A DNA stretch of 64,000 nt from Oculina patagonica (Eukaryota). The stretch's first letter is position 1; every line of letters starts with the position of its first letter. The position numbers and the translations under genes are program-made. Shown here piece after piece: positions 13,920 through 40,195 of this stretch. The notes beneath the pieces were generated by a model, which made no database searches, was not told the origin of the DNA, and saw nothing but the letters and a program-made list of their open reading frames with translations. The stretch covers positions 10,726,001-10,790,000 of the forward strand of contig NC_135762.1 of assembly GCF_052425735.1 (NCBI RefSeq), given 5' to 3'.

Positions 13920-15650
13920 TACGGTGTACGATGAGTATCATGCGTTAAAATCTTGAAAAGTTACATGAAATCTTGAAAAAATACATAAAATCTTGAAAAG
14001 TGACATGAAATCTTGAAAAACTCGAAAAAATCTTGAAAACAAAGTGAAAAATCTTGAAAAACGCGAAAAAATCTTGAAAACGCGAAAAAAATCTTGAAAA
14101 ACACGAAAAATCTTGAAAAACGGTAAAAAATCTTGAAAAACGCGAAAAAATCTTGAAAAACGCGAAAAAAATCTTGAAAACGCGAAAAAAATCTTGAAAA
14201 ACACGAAAAATCTTGAAAAACGGTAAAAAATCTTGAAAAACGCGAAAAAAATCTTGAAAACGCGAAAAAGCTTGAAGATTAATAAAGGTCAAATGAGATA
14301 TTGATCTCACGTGAGACGACGTGCTTGCATGTTGAATACATGTCTGTTAGGCCAAACACTACTCCCTTTGAGCTGTTTCGGTAAAAGTATTGGTTGAGAT
14401 TTGCGTTTTGGAACTCAACTAACTCCCTCCATTTTTTTATTCGTTTTGTCTCGTTACTTGCATCCAACAAATAAATTCTATTACAGTTTGATTACTGCAT
14501 TTGAAGTCTCCAGGATGCGGTAACGATGATCTCTTCTGGCAATTTTTTTATTCTTAAGCAAGACTCGAGTTTCGGTTCTTCAGTGGAACTCATCAGTTGC
14601 TCCTAAAGTCTCGTCCAATTATTTGAAATCATTCGATTTGCCGTTTTTGTACAAATCTCAACACCCAAGCTAAGGGGAGCTTGAAAAACTGAAATAACTC
14701 ACAATGCTTTGAGACTGCATTACCCTTGAAAGGACTAAGATCTTAGATCTTCGCATCCGTTGAAAAGACACAATCCTGCGAGCTGACCGCACGCTTATGA
14801 TAAACAAAATCATTGTTCGAGATAGCCTGCAGAACAGGCGGTTTTTATATTTTTCATTCGCGCTTCGCGCTCGCCCTCGCGTGACCCGCTAAATAAAAAC
14901 CTAGCACTACGCGCCTCGACCCGCAAAATAAACCGCCTGTTCTGCAGGCTATGTTCAAGAGGTCTACTGATCCGATACACGTTCCAGACAGTGAGACAAC
15001 AATATCCTTTTAAAGGACTGATAAACGACTTTTAACTAAACATGCCACAGAACAAGCAAACAAAATGGCATTAATATTTTTACTGAAACAGCTCTAGAGA
15101 TCTAGAGAACGTAAAATCCATAATTAAACAGACTGAAGGTTAACTTTAAGCGGCCAACGGGAGTCGCGTTTGGCCTAACAGACATGTATTCAACAAGTAC
15201 GTCGTGTCACGTGAGATCAAGATCTCAGTTGACCTTTTCATGATAATTTTAAGCTTCCAGCGTTTATATCAAGATTTTCGCGTGATTTTCAATGATTTTC
15301 AAGATTGTTTGGCGTTTTTCAAGTTTTCTCGCGTTTTTCAAGATTTTTCGCGTTTTTCAAGATTTTTTCGCGTTTTCAAGATTTTTTCGCGTTTTCAAGA
15401 TTTTTCGTGTTTTTCAAGATTTTTCGCGTTTTTCAAGATTTTTTTTCGCGTTTTCAAGATTTTTTCGCGTTTTTCAAGATTTTTTCGCGTTTTTCAAGAT
15501 TCTTTACTTTTTTTCAAGATTTTTTCGTGTTTTTCAAGATTTCATGTCACTTTTCAAGATTTTATGTATTTTTTCAAGATTTCATGTAACTTTTCAAGAT
15601 TTTATGTATTTTTTCAAGATTTTAACGCATGATACTCATCGTACACCGTA
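13920..15650. mobile_element. Non-autonomous foldback DNA transposon, IS3EU-like (TAC..GTA termini, 6-bp TSD)
   Basis: TIR start TACGGTGTACGATGAGTATCATGCGTTAAAATCTTGAAAA is perfect on both sides; TSD TTAAGA at 13914-13919 and 15651-15656. Arms are ~450-500 bp and contain arrays of a ~20-22-bp unit AAAATCTTGAAAAACGCGAA. Confidence 0.9.
14823..14951. mobile_element. Academ-like MITE nested in the foldback element
   Basis: TIR TAGCCTGCAGAACAGGCGGTTT / AAACCGCCTGTTCTGCAGGCTA; 9-bp TSD TGTTCGAGA/TGTTCAAGA. Confidence 0.8.
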
Positions 15651-16184
15651 TTAAGAGTTATGACACGCTAAGCACACAACTGGTTTTCCAAAACATCGAG
15701 AATCTTCTTAAATGGATTTGGACACTGACACACGGTGTCTTTGATCCTAAGCTAGTAACCGAAGAACGTTTGCAGAGATATTATCCGTACTCAAGCCGAG
15801 ATGGTAAACCTCCTTTTGACTTCAGAGGCAACAAAGAAGAATCGGGTATTTGTCGACTGATAGCTGTCAAGCGAGACAGTAGTGAACATATATGTACCAC
15901 GTGACCCAAATACTGGATCGTGATTGGTTACTTCCTGAACCGCCACACCTTACTACTAAGGAGCCCATGACTATTGATTTTATATGATTTCTTAAAATGT
16001 TATCAATTTTAAAAAACTATTGACACGGCCGAACTGAAGAAAGATACTTAACCCTTCAGCCTCACAGCCAGCATACAAATTCTCCTTACTGGTTTTCATA
16101 CATTTCTTATGACACTAGCTGGGAGTATACATAAAACATTATTTAAGTGTTTCTTGCATTTTTGATTGTGAAGAGAAATAATTA

Positions 16185-23665: not shown

Positions 23666-24438
23666 TTGAGACTTTGTTAAATGCGCTTTAGGAACATAAT
23701 TATTATCATGATACTTATCACTCACCAAAATTACTGCATTCTGACTGGAGAAGAGCTATACAAATAAATTTGTATATGTTTTCCGTTGAAGCATCTATTT
23801 CTAGTCTTTCCGAAGTTCGCATGATGAGTGTGCTAAAAAATCAAAACTCGCACGACCTCGTGCAATTCCGCCGTTTTAGGCACTCGTGATGTTTAAAAAA
23901 CACTCAAATTTAAGGCTTGTGTTGATAACTTTCAAAAAAAATGCTTGTAACTATTAATCACGAATTGTAACAGAAGGTCGTGCGATTTTTTGGGCCATTT
24001 CTGCCTTTTGCCTTTCTTAATATGGGAAAAAAGTGCATTTAATGCTGAATCGCTAACTATTCTCTACAAAAACAAGGAATTCCTAAACCAACTCGTTCCC
24101 AAGGCTTTTCCCTCCAAATTACCAAGGGAAAAGTCCTGGGAACGAGGTTGATCTTGAACCCGACCATACATCTGTACTCTAGTTGGAAAGCTTGAACTTC
24201 TAAGTACATGTATTAATTTGTGTGTCTTCAGATATCTGAAGTCTTTGTAGTTTAATTTCAAATAACAATTTAGTTGCTTTCATTCGATTTTTACTCTTCC
24301 TCTTCCGCTGTCAAACCTTTATTTGATTTTATGGATGAAACTTTAACGTATTATCATTTACATGAAAGTTTTTACTTGTGGCGGTTTAGGAAGTGAACAA
24401 GTTCAGGTCAATGTCCCTACGAAGCAGAAAGTCAATTC

Positions 24439-27400
24439 CTAAACGTCTTCTCCACTTCCTGAACCATCATCATCATCATCATAAGGTTTATTCAATACTT
24501 CATCGACTTTGCAAATGACCACATCTCTTTGTACCTCGGACATCTTGCTCGGCACTTCGTACGTAATTCCCGCCAGTTCAAACCGCGGCAGACACTGCCG
24601 TAGGTCTTCCATCAACGACGACAGTTCTGCGACCTTGAAGCAGCTGGTCAGCGGATCCTTAAGAAGACTCCAGATGTGTGCATAATTGCCTTGGTTCTCC
24701 GGCGAGCCTTCTCCATTGTCCTCCAGAATTTCGCCAATTTTACAAATAACCAAGTCTCTTTTGATACTGTCAATATCTGTTGGATACTCGTATGTATGTT
24801 GTGGGTCACCTAATTGACATTGCTCGAGCTCAGCCACCAATGCTTCTACGTCTCGCGGTCTCGTTACACTTGTCAGCGGCTCTTTCAGCTCTTGCCAGAG
24901 CTGTTGAAAGGATGCTGACCTAAACTGAGGTTCCATTGCTTCAATGTGATCCTCAAGAGCTTTGGCAATTTTAGGTTTAACTCCGCCGGGAACAATCTTT
25001 CTCTTGCGGAAGAAGGGAATTCTTGGAGCGATTTTCTCCCTTTTGCGTTTCGCTTCAAGAAAGGAGTCCAAAAACGAAACATAAGCTGTGCCTTCTAAGC
25101 CCAAATTTGCCTGTCGTGAGCAAAGAGAAGATAGAAATGTAGCAATATGCCATTACATTTACTTGAGTAAACGTTTGCACGACATCTCTGTTTTCTTTTT
25201 TTATTTCTTTCCCACCCCCTCTCCCCCCCTCCCTCTATGCTGGAATGATGTCTCACTAGAGTCAGTAATATTCTACACTGGCATCATTCGGGGATTCCCT
25301 TTTTGTTGGCATTCACTGTCATAGGCATTCAAGAAGATATTCCGTGAAATTGTATAGACGTCAGGAAGCCAGCAAGCCAGCAAGTAACTGTACATACTAG
25401 TAAATACCCCTATACCGGTACTTTAGACAATTATATCCTTTATATCCCATAGGAAATTGAAGCCAAAGAAGCGTTTGTTACTGAAGATCAAGATGGGAAT
25501 AATTGCGAAAAGTGTAACTTAGGGCGCTTTCCATTTGTCAGAACTGGCCGGCCGGTCCTGTGGTTTTCTTTGTCCCGAAAAATGGGCCTTTTGCACGAGA
25601 GTTTTCCACAAATCCACCATAACAATTTGTATAACATATTATGTATTGACTGATTTGACCGGACAAATCTGACTAACAACGCGGTGAACGGAATTCTGTT
25701 CTCGAATATACTGGTCTGGCCGGCCAGCATAGACAAATGGAAAATGCCCTTAGTTAAACTTACGTTTAATTTACGTCAATTTTAATGAAATTCTCTTAAT
25801 ATAATTCCACTTTGTTTTTTAAGTAAAATTTCATTGTTCCCATCGCTTCATTGAAATTTCATGTGCGCTTTCTATTACAATTTCTGCAACTTGCAATCGC
25901 CCAAAACCTTTTGGGTTCCACGTGCGACCTAGTACCCAATGGGTAACTTGTGGTCTATGAAAGTTGATGGATGACTGGACGCCCAGTGGCCGCCCCATTT
26001 CGTTAGCGTCCAGACGCTATCTGACCCTTATCATCCATGTATGTCCCTAGTGTCAGAAACTGACAAAACATCGCTTGTTCGTACTGGAATTTAGCAAGTG
26101 GACGTATTGAATCAGCCAGGTCAAAAACATAAAGGAACTGAACTTCGTACGCCTCGTTATCACACATTATCGACATATTAGTGATAAAACTGGATCGCGT
26201 CAATAAATTGACTTATTTGTGGGATTTTTTATAACCAGGTGGGTCTTTTTAACAACAGTGAACCATTTCTCCCTTTACTGATCCCTGGCTTATGTGTGAC
26301 GCTGTTGGACTGAATTGTCTGAGAAACGTTGTCGTGTTTAGCGATTTTAGTTTATGCGCTGTCGTAAATTGAAGTTTCGAGCCTTGACCCTACCTTACTT
26401 TTTAGCTACTGCACAAGGCAGAGGGAAACGACCTTTGATCTTTTGTTTTCTGAAATCAATGACATTTGCTTCGAATTTGCTGTAATGTTCTGTAATATTT
26501 ACACTGAATCGGTTCACGCCTTAGCCAGTATATAAAAAAGATGGTATTTCTACTCCTGCCCGGCGGATTTAATGCTGGATTCCCTTCGCAGGGGAAGCGC
26601 CTAGCATCTAATTCGTAAACACCCATTCAGTTTATACTCCTGGGTGAATAAAAGCGCTGTCAGAATAAAGTGTCTGGCTCTTTCAGGACTCCACTAACCA
26701 TTAGGCCAGCGTGCCTCCCAATTAACTGGTTGAGTGCTTTCTAGAGTTAAAAAAAATGCAAGGATGGCGCTGTGTTATTATGTTAACTGTTGCGTGATTG
26801 AAAGCAAACAAAATTCACATGCATGAAGCGTATACAAGCGCGGCAAACGCCATCTTCGATTTTAATGTTTATATGGACGCATCGTATTTTTAGTAGCCTG
26901 TTAGCGCATCAGAAAAGCCTTGAAACTTAGCTGACAGAGTTTGGCTAAAATAAGATAACTATGCGAGTTTCTCCAGCATGTGTATGCACTTTCGCTTTCT
27001 TCAAAAATAATTTGAGAGGGGCACTGGTTGTTTAGATTAACAAGAAAAGATCGATAAACAAATCATTCAGTCAACCTACAGTCTTTTCATTTCGACAGAA
27101 AAATATTTTTACCATATCTAATGATTCTAATGGAGTTGACTTTTAACTAAACGAAATACGCGCTTTAACGGAATGTATTGTGTTTATACCCCAACCTGGC
27201 TGGCGAAAGAAAGCCGCTTGTACGCATGTATGTATTAATACGGTTCATGGTAAGTTCCTCTCTTAGCGTTCAGCGTTCAGTCTGGAATTTTCGCCACAGA
27301 GGCTTACAATGGCAAGTTAAGGCCATCATTATTTTAACAACTACCCAACTATTTCAAAACAAAAACTATAACAATATGAACTTTCATACCTCTATTTGTT

Positions 27401-27518
27401 CAGGTGCGACTTCGCGTTTTGAGACGGCAGAATCTTGTAAGTCCGTTGACTGGCTGTCGCTAAAATGCACGAAAACCAATTTTACAGAAAGAAATACAAT
27501 TATTAAAAAACGCGACAT
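24439..27518 (-). CDS. Uncharacterised secreted proprotein (266 aa, 2 exons) with a duplicated ~65-aa Cys-containing domain
   Basis: Exon 1 27518-27390 encodes MSRFLIIVFLSVKLVFVHFSDSQ...KREVAPEQIE, donor GTATGA, phase 0. Exon 2 25110-24439 follows acceptor CTTCTCTTTGCTCACGACAG in the matching phase. AATAAA on the minus strand at 24323-24318. Confidence 0.8.
25523..25749. mobile_element. Harbinger MITE in intron
   Basis: TTA TSD; TIR GGGCGCTTTCCATTTGTC / GACAAATGGAAAATGCCC. Confidence 0.8.
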
Positions 27519-29077
27519 TCCGCGACTTCGTCTTCTTAAACAGTCCTGACGAAGATATTCTCAGCATCCGTGGAGCGCTTTTGATTTTAAAAATAATGAA
27601 ACTTCACCCTTAAATGTTCCAATATTTACTCGAGTAACACGTATTAGAGGCACTTAGCTATTCGACCTTGAGAGTGCCTACCTGTCATTGGTCACCAAAG
27701 CATTCATTGCAAACACCGACCTTTTTCAACACGCTCCGTAGAACAGCAATGATTTCTGAAACAATCGTGACTCAAAAACCTGTTTTCATTCACCAACATG
27801 TTTGAACTCCCAGCGTTTGTGTCAGACAACCGCGGGGGCGAAAATAAAAGATAAATAAAACGACCAGATTGAAACTAGGCACAAAGAAAAAGTACGGTGA
27901 TATATAATAACAATTGAGTCGATTAATGTACGAACCAGTTTTCGCATGAGATTCATATTCATTTACTAAAATGAATGACCTCCAAATAGATTTCTTTATT
28001 ATTTTTTCTTTATTTAATACTGTATTCATCCTTTGTATGACTCAATACCCTATTGCTTATTGTTATCTAGGGCGGCGATATCCTCATTCAAAAATATGGA
28101 AGCCGTTTAATGCTAATTTAAACCCTTTTCACTTTTTGTGGTTGTCACAATGAAGACTACTCTCGAAATACTCGATCTCGAGTTGACACAGCAAAAGCTG
28201 AAGTTGTTTGGCATCTCTGATCAGCTCTTGCCAGAAGCATTTTACTTCATTTTTTGCGTCAAGTACTAGACATTACTGCTACTGGTCCCTTAATGAAGAT
28301 GTCAACCGTGGTACCCCATACGTCTTTCATAGTTTCATTCATTTATCGTGGCACTTGCAGCCAGTGTGACGGTTTTCTGTTAAAATTTCATGTAAGATGT
28401 ATTTTGCGTGTAATACGCCGGATCCCAAGTACTTGAGGTTTGGAAATGAACACTTTGTGTTTTAAAACCAAGTTTAATTTACTCAAATTTAAATTGAGAG
28501 GAGATTCATCCGAAATAAAGGAAGTTACTCGCTTAAGTCGTCATTATTTCTTGACGAAAATGAAGGTGAATGACATGCAGAAAAAAACACTTTTGTTTGG
28601 AAAACAGGAACGAAATAAACAAAAGAACAATGGTAAAACAGAGCCTACACTGCTTGTTCAAGGTGTTCTGTCAGTTTGGGGATGAATATCCCAAAGAACG
28701 AGTTCATTTTGGGAGACAAAACCCCTCGTCTTTTCTCTACTCGCTATTTTTCACGCTGCTTCTCAAGCAACCGAACGCCTGAAAAAGTTTGCTAAACAGT
28801 GTGACTGTCACTCCACTGGCCAAGTAAGCTGCGCCGTTAAAAGCGGAAACTCTGCAGTTCACTTATTCCACCCACGGAGGACATTCCGGGCCAACGAGAA
28901 CGCGACCGCCCCACCGATATGTCTGGAGCCTCGCAATGTGAACTCTCCACGAGCGGGACTGAAAACGCACGAACCCGCAAAAAAAAAACGCACAAGAAAG
29001 AGACGAACAAAGAAGACAGGAGGGGCACAAGTGTTAGCCCCCCCCCCCCCCACCCCAAGACATCAAAAGGCGGCTAC

Positions 29078-39598: not shown

Positions 39599-40195
39599 TC
39601 ACAAACCATTTACAATCTTCTTGATTTCGGCCCCCGCTTTGATAAGGAACGACGCGCAGTCGAAATGCCCCCCGCGCACCGCGAAATCCAGCGCGGAGCA
39701 CCCTTGCGAGTCCAGCAACTCCACTTCAGCCCCGAAATCAATCAGCAGTTGAAGGCATTCGAAGCTCCCTTCTGCGGCCGCGTAATGTAACGCTGTGAGT
39801 CCAGACGGACTCTGGTGATTCACATCGATTTCGTCTTTTTGCATAATTCTCGTTAGCTCATCTACATCGTTGTCGGTGACCGCAGTGAAAAAGACGACTT
39901 CAGGAGCGAACGACACACTTCTTGTCCTCTTCAACCCATTTGGCGGAGGATCCGAAACTATCTCCTTACTGCGCGTTGGCCTTTTCGAGTGCATCCTTGC
40001 CATTTCTTGACAGTCCGGTAAGGAAGAAGCCCTCCTCAACACTCCTAGGTTCCTTTCATTTGGCGGCCTGTTTATTTTATGCTTTATGCTAGCCTCGGAA
40101 TATTTCCTTGCCTTGACGCGGCCGTACCGTTCGTCCTTCATTCTCTCTACGGAAGGGGCAAAACCACAAAACGATTGTCGACGATAGCCGTTCAT
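39599..40195 (-). CDS. PPP1R27: Protein phosphatase 1 regulatory subunit, PPP1R27-like (RVxF motif + ankyrin repeats), single exon
   Basis: RSVSF PP1-docking motif directly before ankyrin repeats (SGLTALHYAAAEGSFECLQLLIDFGAEV; GCSALDFAVRGGHFDCASFLIKAGA); RRASS candidate PKA site; 198-aa intact ORF. Exact orthology not tested. Confidence 0.8.
   Translation of the reverse strand: MNGYRRQSFCGFAPSVERMKDERYGRVKARKYSEASIKHKINRPPNERNLGVLRRASSLPDCQEMARMHSKRPTRSKEIVSDPPPNGLKRTRSVSFAPEVVFFTAVTDNDVDELTRIMQKDEIDVNHQSPSGLTALHYAAAEGSFECLQLLIDFGAEVELLDSQGCSALDFAVRGGHFDCASFLIKAGAEIKKIVNGL

Follow-up and report, generated by a model that had tools for sequence, protein, structure and literature searches.

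What is encoded on the minus strand at positions 24439 to 27518 of a 64,000-nucleotide stretch of the genome of the stony coral Oculina patagonica (assembly GCF_052425735.1, contig NC_135762.1, positions 10,726,001 to 10,790,000; hereafter the window, in whose coordinates all positions are given), and what might its product do? An original prediction, made by eye from the letters, had proposed a secreted proprotein in which a signal-peptide exon is spliced in phase to an open reading frame (ORF) of 221 codons, and in which a duplicated cysteine-containing domain is followed by an acidic Ser-Gly tail. The features that it described are confirmed, and its interpretation is supported in part. We found a real, single-copy gene with two coding exons, whose 266-aa product belongs to an uncharacterised hexacoral protein family with a strongly constrained helical core. 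We give a rough probability of 0.55 to the whole reading, namely that this product is secreted, is processed by proteolysis to release a core acting as a ligand or binding module, and is possibly a proteoglycan.

Gene model and transcript support

The sequence and its translation give two coding exons on the minus strand, separated by a single phase-0 intron, as follows.

27390..27518, minus strand: coding part of exon 1, the signal-peptide exon, with the start codon at 27518 and 43 codons
25111..27389, minus strand: intron of 2279 nt, phase 0, GT..AG
24439..25110, minus strand: coding part of exon 2, with 223 codons for residues 44-266 and the stop codon at 24439-24441

At the donor, the coding end of exon 1 (...CAAATAGAG) abuts GTATGA at 27390/27389; on the acceptor side, the intron tract (...CACGACAG) reaches to 25111, and exon 2 opens with GCAAAT at 25110. 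Both the 221-aa ORF (24439..25104, minus strand) and a 44-aa ORF (27384..27518, minus strand) are contained in the ORF list. The spliced product was identical, residue by residue (100%), to RefSeq XP_078371849.1, "uncharacterized protein LOC144655470 [Oculina patagonica]". The predicted in-phase splice is thus supported both by its GT..AG sites and by this identity, and the gene model drawn by eye matches that of the NCBI pipeline. The gene is single-copy in the 529-Mb assembly, and its layout, a signal-peptide exon of about 40-45 codons followed by one large exon, is common to Nematostella and Exaiptasia.

The GenBank submitter's model of the same gene (KAL9972325.1, here P0028; 294 aa) has a different 5' exon, at about 27455 and upstream, and is without a signal peptide; this alternative exon looks like a retroelement-protein or transposon-derived fragment. 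We favour the signal-peptide exon because of the RefSeq model, conservation in Orbicella and a continuous contig over 27389-27700. Upstream of the main start at 27518, and overlapping it in another frame, lies a 35-codon ORF opened by an ATG at 27567 (27460-27567, minus strand), a possible upstream ORF if transcription starts that far up.

Public-run data were compared over 24200-27700, by using Logan contigs of three runs and the raw reads of a fourth (X23). Exon 2 was covered by contigs of all three runs at 96-97% identity. In run X2, a contig of 1024 nt, about 3% divergent from the window and derived from a close relative or another individual in a different sample, spans 24203-25109 and then 27389-27475, leaving out 2279 nt. 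This gap is bounded by CT..AC as read on the plus strand, hence by GT..AG on the gene strand, and the cut fits equally one base rightward, that is, exactly at 27390^25110, so that an intron-skipping contig was found for the very junction that had been predicted. A contig of run X1 runs on into the intron to 25186 and, since it includes intron sequence, represents unspliced RNA or DNA. Full-length 281-aa orthologues of the Stylophora and Pocillopora types, signal peptide included, lie uninterrupted within contigs of 1.5-1.8 kb, as expected from spliced mRNA.

Rfam and tRNA scans of the locus and the intron were empty. The intron carries, at 25510-25761, an element resembling a miniature inverted-repeat transposable element, with 52-nt terminal inverted repeats that are 79% complementary and 148 nt apart. 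The Logan contigs of three runs pile up on this element to depths of hundreds to thousands, with many joints of the 'opposite strands' kind, and because of this depth we regard it as a high-copy repeat. A second high-copy repeat, at 26657-26773, reaches a summed contig depth of 280-600 in the three runs and has no tRNA or Rfam match.

The two-repeat core and its family

The product has four parts: a signal peptide, a disordered basic region ending in aromatic-x-K-R-K, a compact core that is acidic and all-helical, and a variable tail. The core (residues 88-252; isoelectric point (pI) 4.7 for residues 82-252) contains seven helices and is built around two repeats.

24721..24915, minus strand: repeat 1, residues 109-173, three helices, with invariant W115, P121-L122-T123, C141 and C166
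24490..24690, minus strand: repeat 2, residues 184-250, three helices, with C200 and C216 on the stony-coral side only and C243 near-invariant

The two repeats of about 65 aa share 34% identity (BLASTP, single comparison, E 5e-15), far above chance, and the duplication noticed by eye is real. In each repeat, helix 1 carries W-x2-L-[KR]-x-P-[LM]-T, helix 2 ends in L-x2-C, and helix 3 carries R-D-[LV]-x-I-C-K. AlphaFold2 modelled the core alone with a mean predicted local distance difference test score (pLDDT) of 80 and a predicted template modelling (TM) score of 0.77, and in the full model the core blocks had a pLDDT near 90, with values below 50 in the pro-region and the tail. Internal repeat similarity was also detected in the Nematostella (E 3e-11) and Exaiptasia (E 6e-8) orthologues, and therefore the duplication predates the split between sea anemones and stony corals.

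Across 29 sequences, 29 columns of the core are invariant. In comparison with the relative that is about 3% divergent, 13 synonymous and 11 non-synonymous changes were found among the listed changes; only two replacements (A133T and S158T, both conservative) fall inside the two repeats, the others lying in the pro-region or the inter-repeat linker. These comparisons indicate that the core is under purifying selection.

Not every part of the proposed domain architecture survived. One disulfide per repeat had been suggested, and C141 and C166 in repeat 1 are indeed invariant, with C243 absent only where one sequence is truncated. However, the first cysteine of repeat 2 in that scheme, C216, the counterpart of C141, is a tyrosine in all six members of the anemone side (the three named anemones and P0024, P0026 and P0027), and the number of core cysteines, counted from the conserved opening motif, is 3 on the anemone side, 4 in two members, and 5, once 6, in stony corals, so that the suggestion does not hold. 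An odd count recurs, a hint that one cysteine may be free or may link two chains. A homodimer prediction left the chain unfolded (pLDDT 35-37) and counts neither for nor against a dimer.

The helical domain had been thought possibly unnamed, and searches of Pfam, PDB, AFDB and the ESM Atlas gave no relative. Pfam returned no family for the query and, over 27 members, only scattered and incoherent sub-threshold matches, and a sequence-profile search of the PDB gave no significant match (best E 0.79, the PCIF1 WW-domain protein). Foldseek, run with the full and the core-only models, found no match at E <= 0.001 (best E 0.59-0.65 in the PDB and 0.067 in AFDB clusters; TM <= 0.25). With both models, VIA-align over 48,161 chains had a best Z of 5.0-5.6, to unrelated helical proteins and below the tool's stated background for helical models; a relationship to glypicans, which appeared in rows at Z 3.8-4.0, was rejected as being within noise. 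The ESM Atlas, searched by features and shape, offered no usable match (TM <= 0.29, normalised on the query). No characterised family can be named for this protein, and an absent match is no proof of a new fold.

A word-indexed search retrieved 27 homologues at 39-100% identity, including named Stylophora and Montipora members. Cluster look-ups named Stylophora, Pocillopora, Orbicella, Montipora (two species), Actinia, Exaiptasia and Nematostella, all annotated "uncharacterized". An HMMER profile search of 1.84 billion representative proteins gave only 15 matches, four of which are fragments of 33-80 aa, and none of the named matches lies outside Hexacorallia; at this sensitivity the family is found, among named matches, only in stony corals and sea anemones. 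Two others of the 15 were discarded: P0082 (2534 aa) is a translated satellite, and P0081 (418 aa), a tandem array of units of about 47 aa beside dynein-like ORFs with an hhalign probability of only 22%, is probably spurious.

The orthologues are Stylophora LOC111335497, Pocillopora LOC131776597, Orbicella LOC110065850, Exaiptasia LOC110248176, Actinia LOC116290620 and Nematostella LOC5510228 (A7SCC2). At 39-89% identity they share with the Oculina protein its architecture, two-exon layout and two repeats. What varies is whether and where the Ser-Gly motif occurs, how many cysteines the core holds (3, 4 or 5), and the first basic cluster. The gene tree has an anemone side and a stony-coral side, the pattern that one-to-one orthology predicts. 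RefSeq already lists the gene, without a name, and the family is undescribed in the searched literature.

The genomic neighbourhood was also compared. At 39602-40195 (minus strand), 12 kb from the family gene, the window contains a single-exon ankyrin-repeat gene with 84% identity over 198 aa to the Stylophora 'protein phosphatase 1 regulatory subunit 27-like' protein XP_022797132.1. A PPP1R27-like ankyrin gene lies within a few kb of the orthologue in Nematostella (L003), in Exaiptasia (L004) and at locus L002, and adjoins it in Stylophora, and the GenBank model PFX21525.1 of Stylophora is a fusion of the family gene and the PPP1R27-like gene. The orientation differs among genomes; the neighbourhood itself is a microsynteny conserved across Hexacorallia. 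Elsewhere in the window, at 13938-15654, ORFs consist almost wholly of short F/S/R/Q/D/K motifs such as FSRF, FQDF and FKIF (13938-14310, minus strand; 15204-15654, plus strand), and look like translated tandem repeat or satellite DNA, possibly in inverted copies.

Secretion, processing and the Ser-Gly tail

Outside the core, the following features bear on how the protein may be handled by the cell.

Residues 33-36: SKRE, weakly conserved
25039-25050, minus strand: KRKR, residues 64-67, in part of the stony corals only
24997-25008, minus strand: RKRK, residues 78-81, with KRK conserved into anemones
24997..25050, minus strand: basic disordered pro-region with KRKR and RKRK, pLDDT <50 for residues 60-87
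24442..24480, minus strand: acidic Ser-Gly tail DDDDDGSGSGEDV, residues 254-266, with serines S260 and S262

Residues 1-22 (MSRFLIIVFLSVKLVFVHFSDS) are signal-peptide-like, with a hydrophobic window of mean Kyte-Doolittle value 2.86, and small residues at -1 and -3 would permit cleavage, which would likely occur after FSDS, between S22 and Q23. A hydrophobic N-terminal segment is present in all eight full-length RefSeq models (Oculina, Stylophora, Pocillopora, Orbicella, Montipora, Actinia, Exaiptasia and Nematostella), and the N-termini of Orbicella, Stylophora and the anemones are similar to that of Oculina. This conservation strongly suggests secretion, and entry into the secretory pathway, as originally proposed, is very probable.

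Residues 23-87 are basic (pI 9.6 for residues 23-81), poorly conserved and predicted to be disordered. All three basic clusters to which the original prediction had drawn attention (SKRE, KRKR and RKRK) are present, but wide conservation into anemones holds only for the KRK of the third, which the alignment shows as [YF]-x-K-R-K, for example YYKRKVYPD in anemones. The genome contains 26 matches to the P-domain of convertases, and cleavage by a convertase at the conserved KR(K) is plausible. The protein contains no N-glycosylation sequons.

The tail, which runs D254-D258, G-S260-G-S262-G and E-D-V (DDDDD-G-S-G-S-G-E-D-V), is present as predicted and fits the acidic Ser-Gly-X-Gly consensus for glycosaminoglycan acceptors, but an acidic Ser-Gly tail is not a family-wide feature. 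SGSG or GSGSG occurs at three different positions in the family: at the C-terminus in most stony corals, just after the signal peptide in Actinia, Exaiptasia and P0024, and in the inter-repeat linker in P0022. At typical Ser and Gly frequencies, SGSG is expected by chance, as a rough estimate, in well under 1% of proteins of this size. The three separate placements, together with this low expectation, suggest selection for such a site somewhere in the protein. A xylosyltransferase is present in the genome, with Xylo_C (PF12529) matches of 95.7 and 70.2 bits on contig C12. The Asp run itself (24463-24477, minus strand) varies in length among close relatives, because the X1 and X2 contigs lack 3 bases at 24465 and are thus one GAT codon shorter. 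As judged by its motif, the C-terminal tail is a probable glycosaminoglycan acceptor in most stony corals.

From these features we propose that the protein would be translocated into the endoplasmic reticulum, with removal of the signal peptide around S22/Q23, and that a subtilisin-like proprotein convertase may then cleave it behind the conserved KR(K), freeing a core of about 20 kDa. The core would most likely serve as a soluble extracellular ligand or binding module, and not as bulk structural matrix. The acidic SGSG tail of most stony corals would probably be xylosylated, making the product a small, perhaps part-time, proteoglycan; in some anemones an equivalent SGSG is found directly behind the signal peptide instead.

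Several points weigh against this proposal. The signal peptide call rests on judgement by eye together with hydropathy and conservation. KRKR is not conserved in Acroporidae and anemones, and the KRKR...RKRK pair also fits a bipartite nuclear-localisation pattern. Montipora and its relatives, Nematostella and P0026/P0027 all lack the Ser-Gly motif, and consequently the family cannot depend on a glycosaminoglycan chain. In anemones, SGSG lies upstream of KRK, where cleavage would detach it from the conserved core; this is awkward for a model in which processing and the sugar chain both serve the core. That run X2 is RNA is no more than a guess, and none of the 3.5 million raw reads of the poly-A run X23 fell on the exons: in that sample either expression is low or absent, or the organism differs. 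In the searched literature, no family member is mentioned by accession, locus name or conserved motif.

Competing explanations and known systems

The proposed reading can be extended further. The three-helix unit of about 65 residues may be an extracellular domain, new also in its fold, that originated in the hexacoral ancestor, within a conserved secreted ligand whose glycosaminoglycan site has moved three times, selection acting on having the chain and not on its place. We regard this extension as tentative and rather doubtful.

An alternative that fares less well, and that we consider unlikely, is a prohormone or neuropeptide-like precursor, from which short peptides would be freed at the N-terminal basic sites while the helical part serves as a carrier or sorting domain. 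A signal peptide combined with several di- and tetrabasic sites within disordered sequence, a Gln at the likely mature N-terminus that could cyclise, a core resembling granin-type sorting domains in its acidic charge, and the many convertases in the genome are all consistent with such a precursor. However, conservation within the protein is lowest in the segments that separate the basic sites, and the part that is strongly conserved is a folded core of 160 residues; neither repeated peptide copies nor Gly-basic amidation signals were seen, and the repeats are helical units of about 65 residues.

Cnidarian cnidocysts contain chondroitin, which has been reported in capsule morphogenesis, and the protein might accordingly be a hexacoral-specific component of a secretory organelle or gland (spirocyst or cnidocyst matrix, or mucus), with chondroitin carried on its Ser-Gly site. 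The named range, Actiniaria and Scleractinia only, matches that of hexacoral-specific traits, and a signal peptide and a Ser-Gly motif are at hand. Nonetheless, a small, single-copy, slowly evolving globular protein is unlike typical capsule structural proteins, and the Ser-Gly motif is missing in Nematostella, which leaves this role with a low probability.

A skeletal role is more improbable still. The original prediction had listed matrix or skeletal functions among its candidates, and a skeletal organic-matrix (biomineralisation) protein whose Asp-rich tail binds calcium carbonate, as in coral acid-rich proteins, would account for secretion, for the Asp run with flanking acidic residues in Oculina, and for the acidic tails in several stony corals. 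As an ancestral function this is unlikely, since Nematostella, Exaiptasia and Actinia, which do not calcify, have one-to-one orthologues. Moreover, the acidic run amounts to just five residues, its length differs among close relatives, and Orbicella and Montipora show it weakly or not at all; the conserved part is a folded domain encoded by a single-copy gene rather than low-complexity acid. The features of coral acid-rich and skeletal proteins (restriction to calcifiers, expansion, and a long Asp/Glu-rich region) were not found in the family. The Stylophora accession was seen neither in any of the main texts searched nor in the searched supplements of the Stylophora/Oculina skeletal proteome paper (PMC9532382), a weak point given the small size of those supplements, and no family member occurs in them or in the searched supplements, likewise small files, of the Stylophora cell atlas (PMC8162421). 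The protein is not skeleton-specific, and a secondary skeletal role may exist in corals.

Least probable of all is a protein that is not secreted, with an N-terminus that is an anchor or an annotation artefact, a bipartite nuclear-localisation signal in KRKR...RKRK (KR, a 12-residue spacer and RKRK fit the pattern) and a kinase site in the R-S-x-S loop (R107-S108-A-S110, invariant at S108), as the different start of KAL9972325.1 without a signal peptide might suggest, because signal-like N-termini with small residues placed for cleavage are kept in eight species, the signal-peptide exon is conserved in position, the first basic cluster is not conserved in anemones, and the alternative GenBank 5' end looks transposon-derived.

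Lineage-restricted secreted proteins are numerous in corals and sea anemones, but few of them combine a single-copy gene, one-to-one orthology, strong constraint and a confident fold with no known relative, and hence the protein encoded here makes a sensible candidate for an extracellular signal or binding factor peculiar to hexacorals. Two laboratory anemones, Nematostella and Exaiptasia, both carry the orthologue, so that its function is directly testable there. Should the shifting Ser-Gly site indeed bear a glycosaminoglycan, the family would exemplify positional turnover of a modification site.

Among known systems, coral acid-rich and skeletal organic matrix proteins are likewise secreted and have Asp runs, whereas the Oculina protein has a conserved globular domain, an Asp run of five residues, and orthologues in non-calcifying anemones. 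The granins and other prohormone-type convertase substrates offer a parallel in layout, namely a disordered basic N-terminal region with KR/KRKR, an acidic remainder and, in this family, a conserved KRK; yet here the conserved part is a folded two-repeat domain, amidation signals are lacking, and Pfam indicates no homology to granins, 7B2 or proSAAS. The part-time proteoglycans (serglycin, bikunin and the C-terminal domain of testican) provide a likeness drawn from general knowledge rather than from homology. In contrast to them, the Oculina protein has no detected sequence or fold relation to solved or Pfam-modelled proteins, and the motif of its family differs in position between lineages, several orthologues lacking it. 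Like them, it is small and has a signal peptide and an acidic cluster adjoining SGSG, in a genome that encodes a xylosyltransferase.

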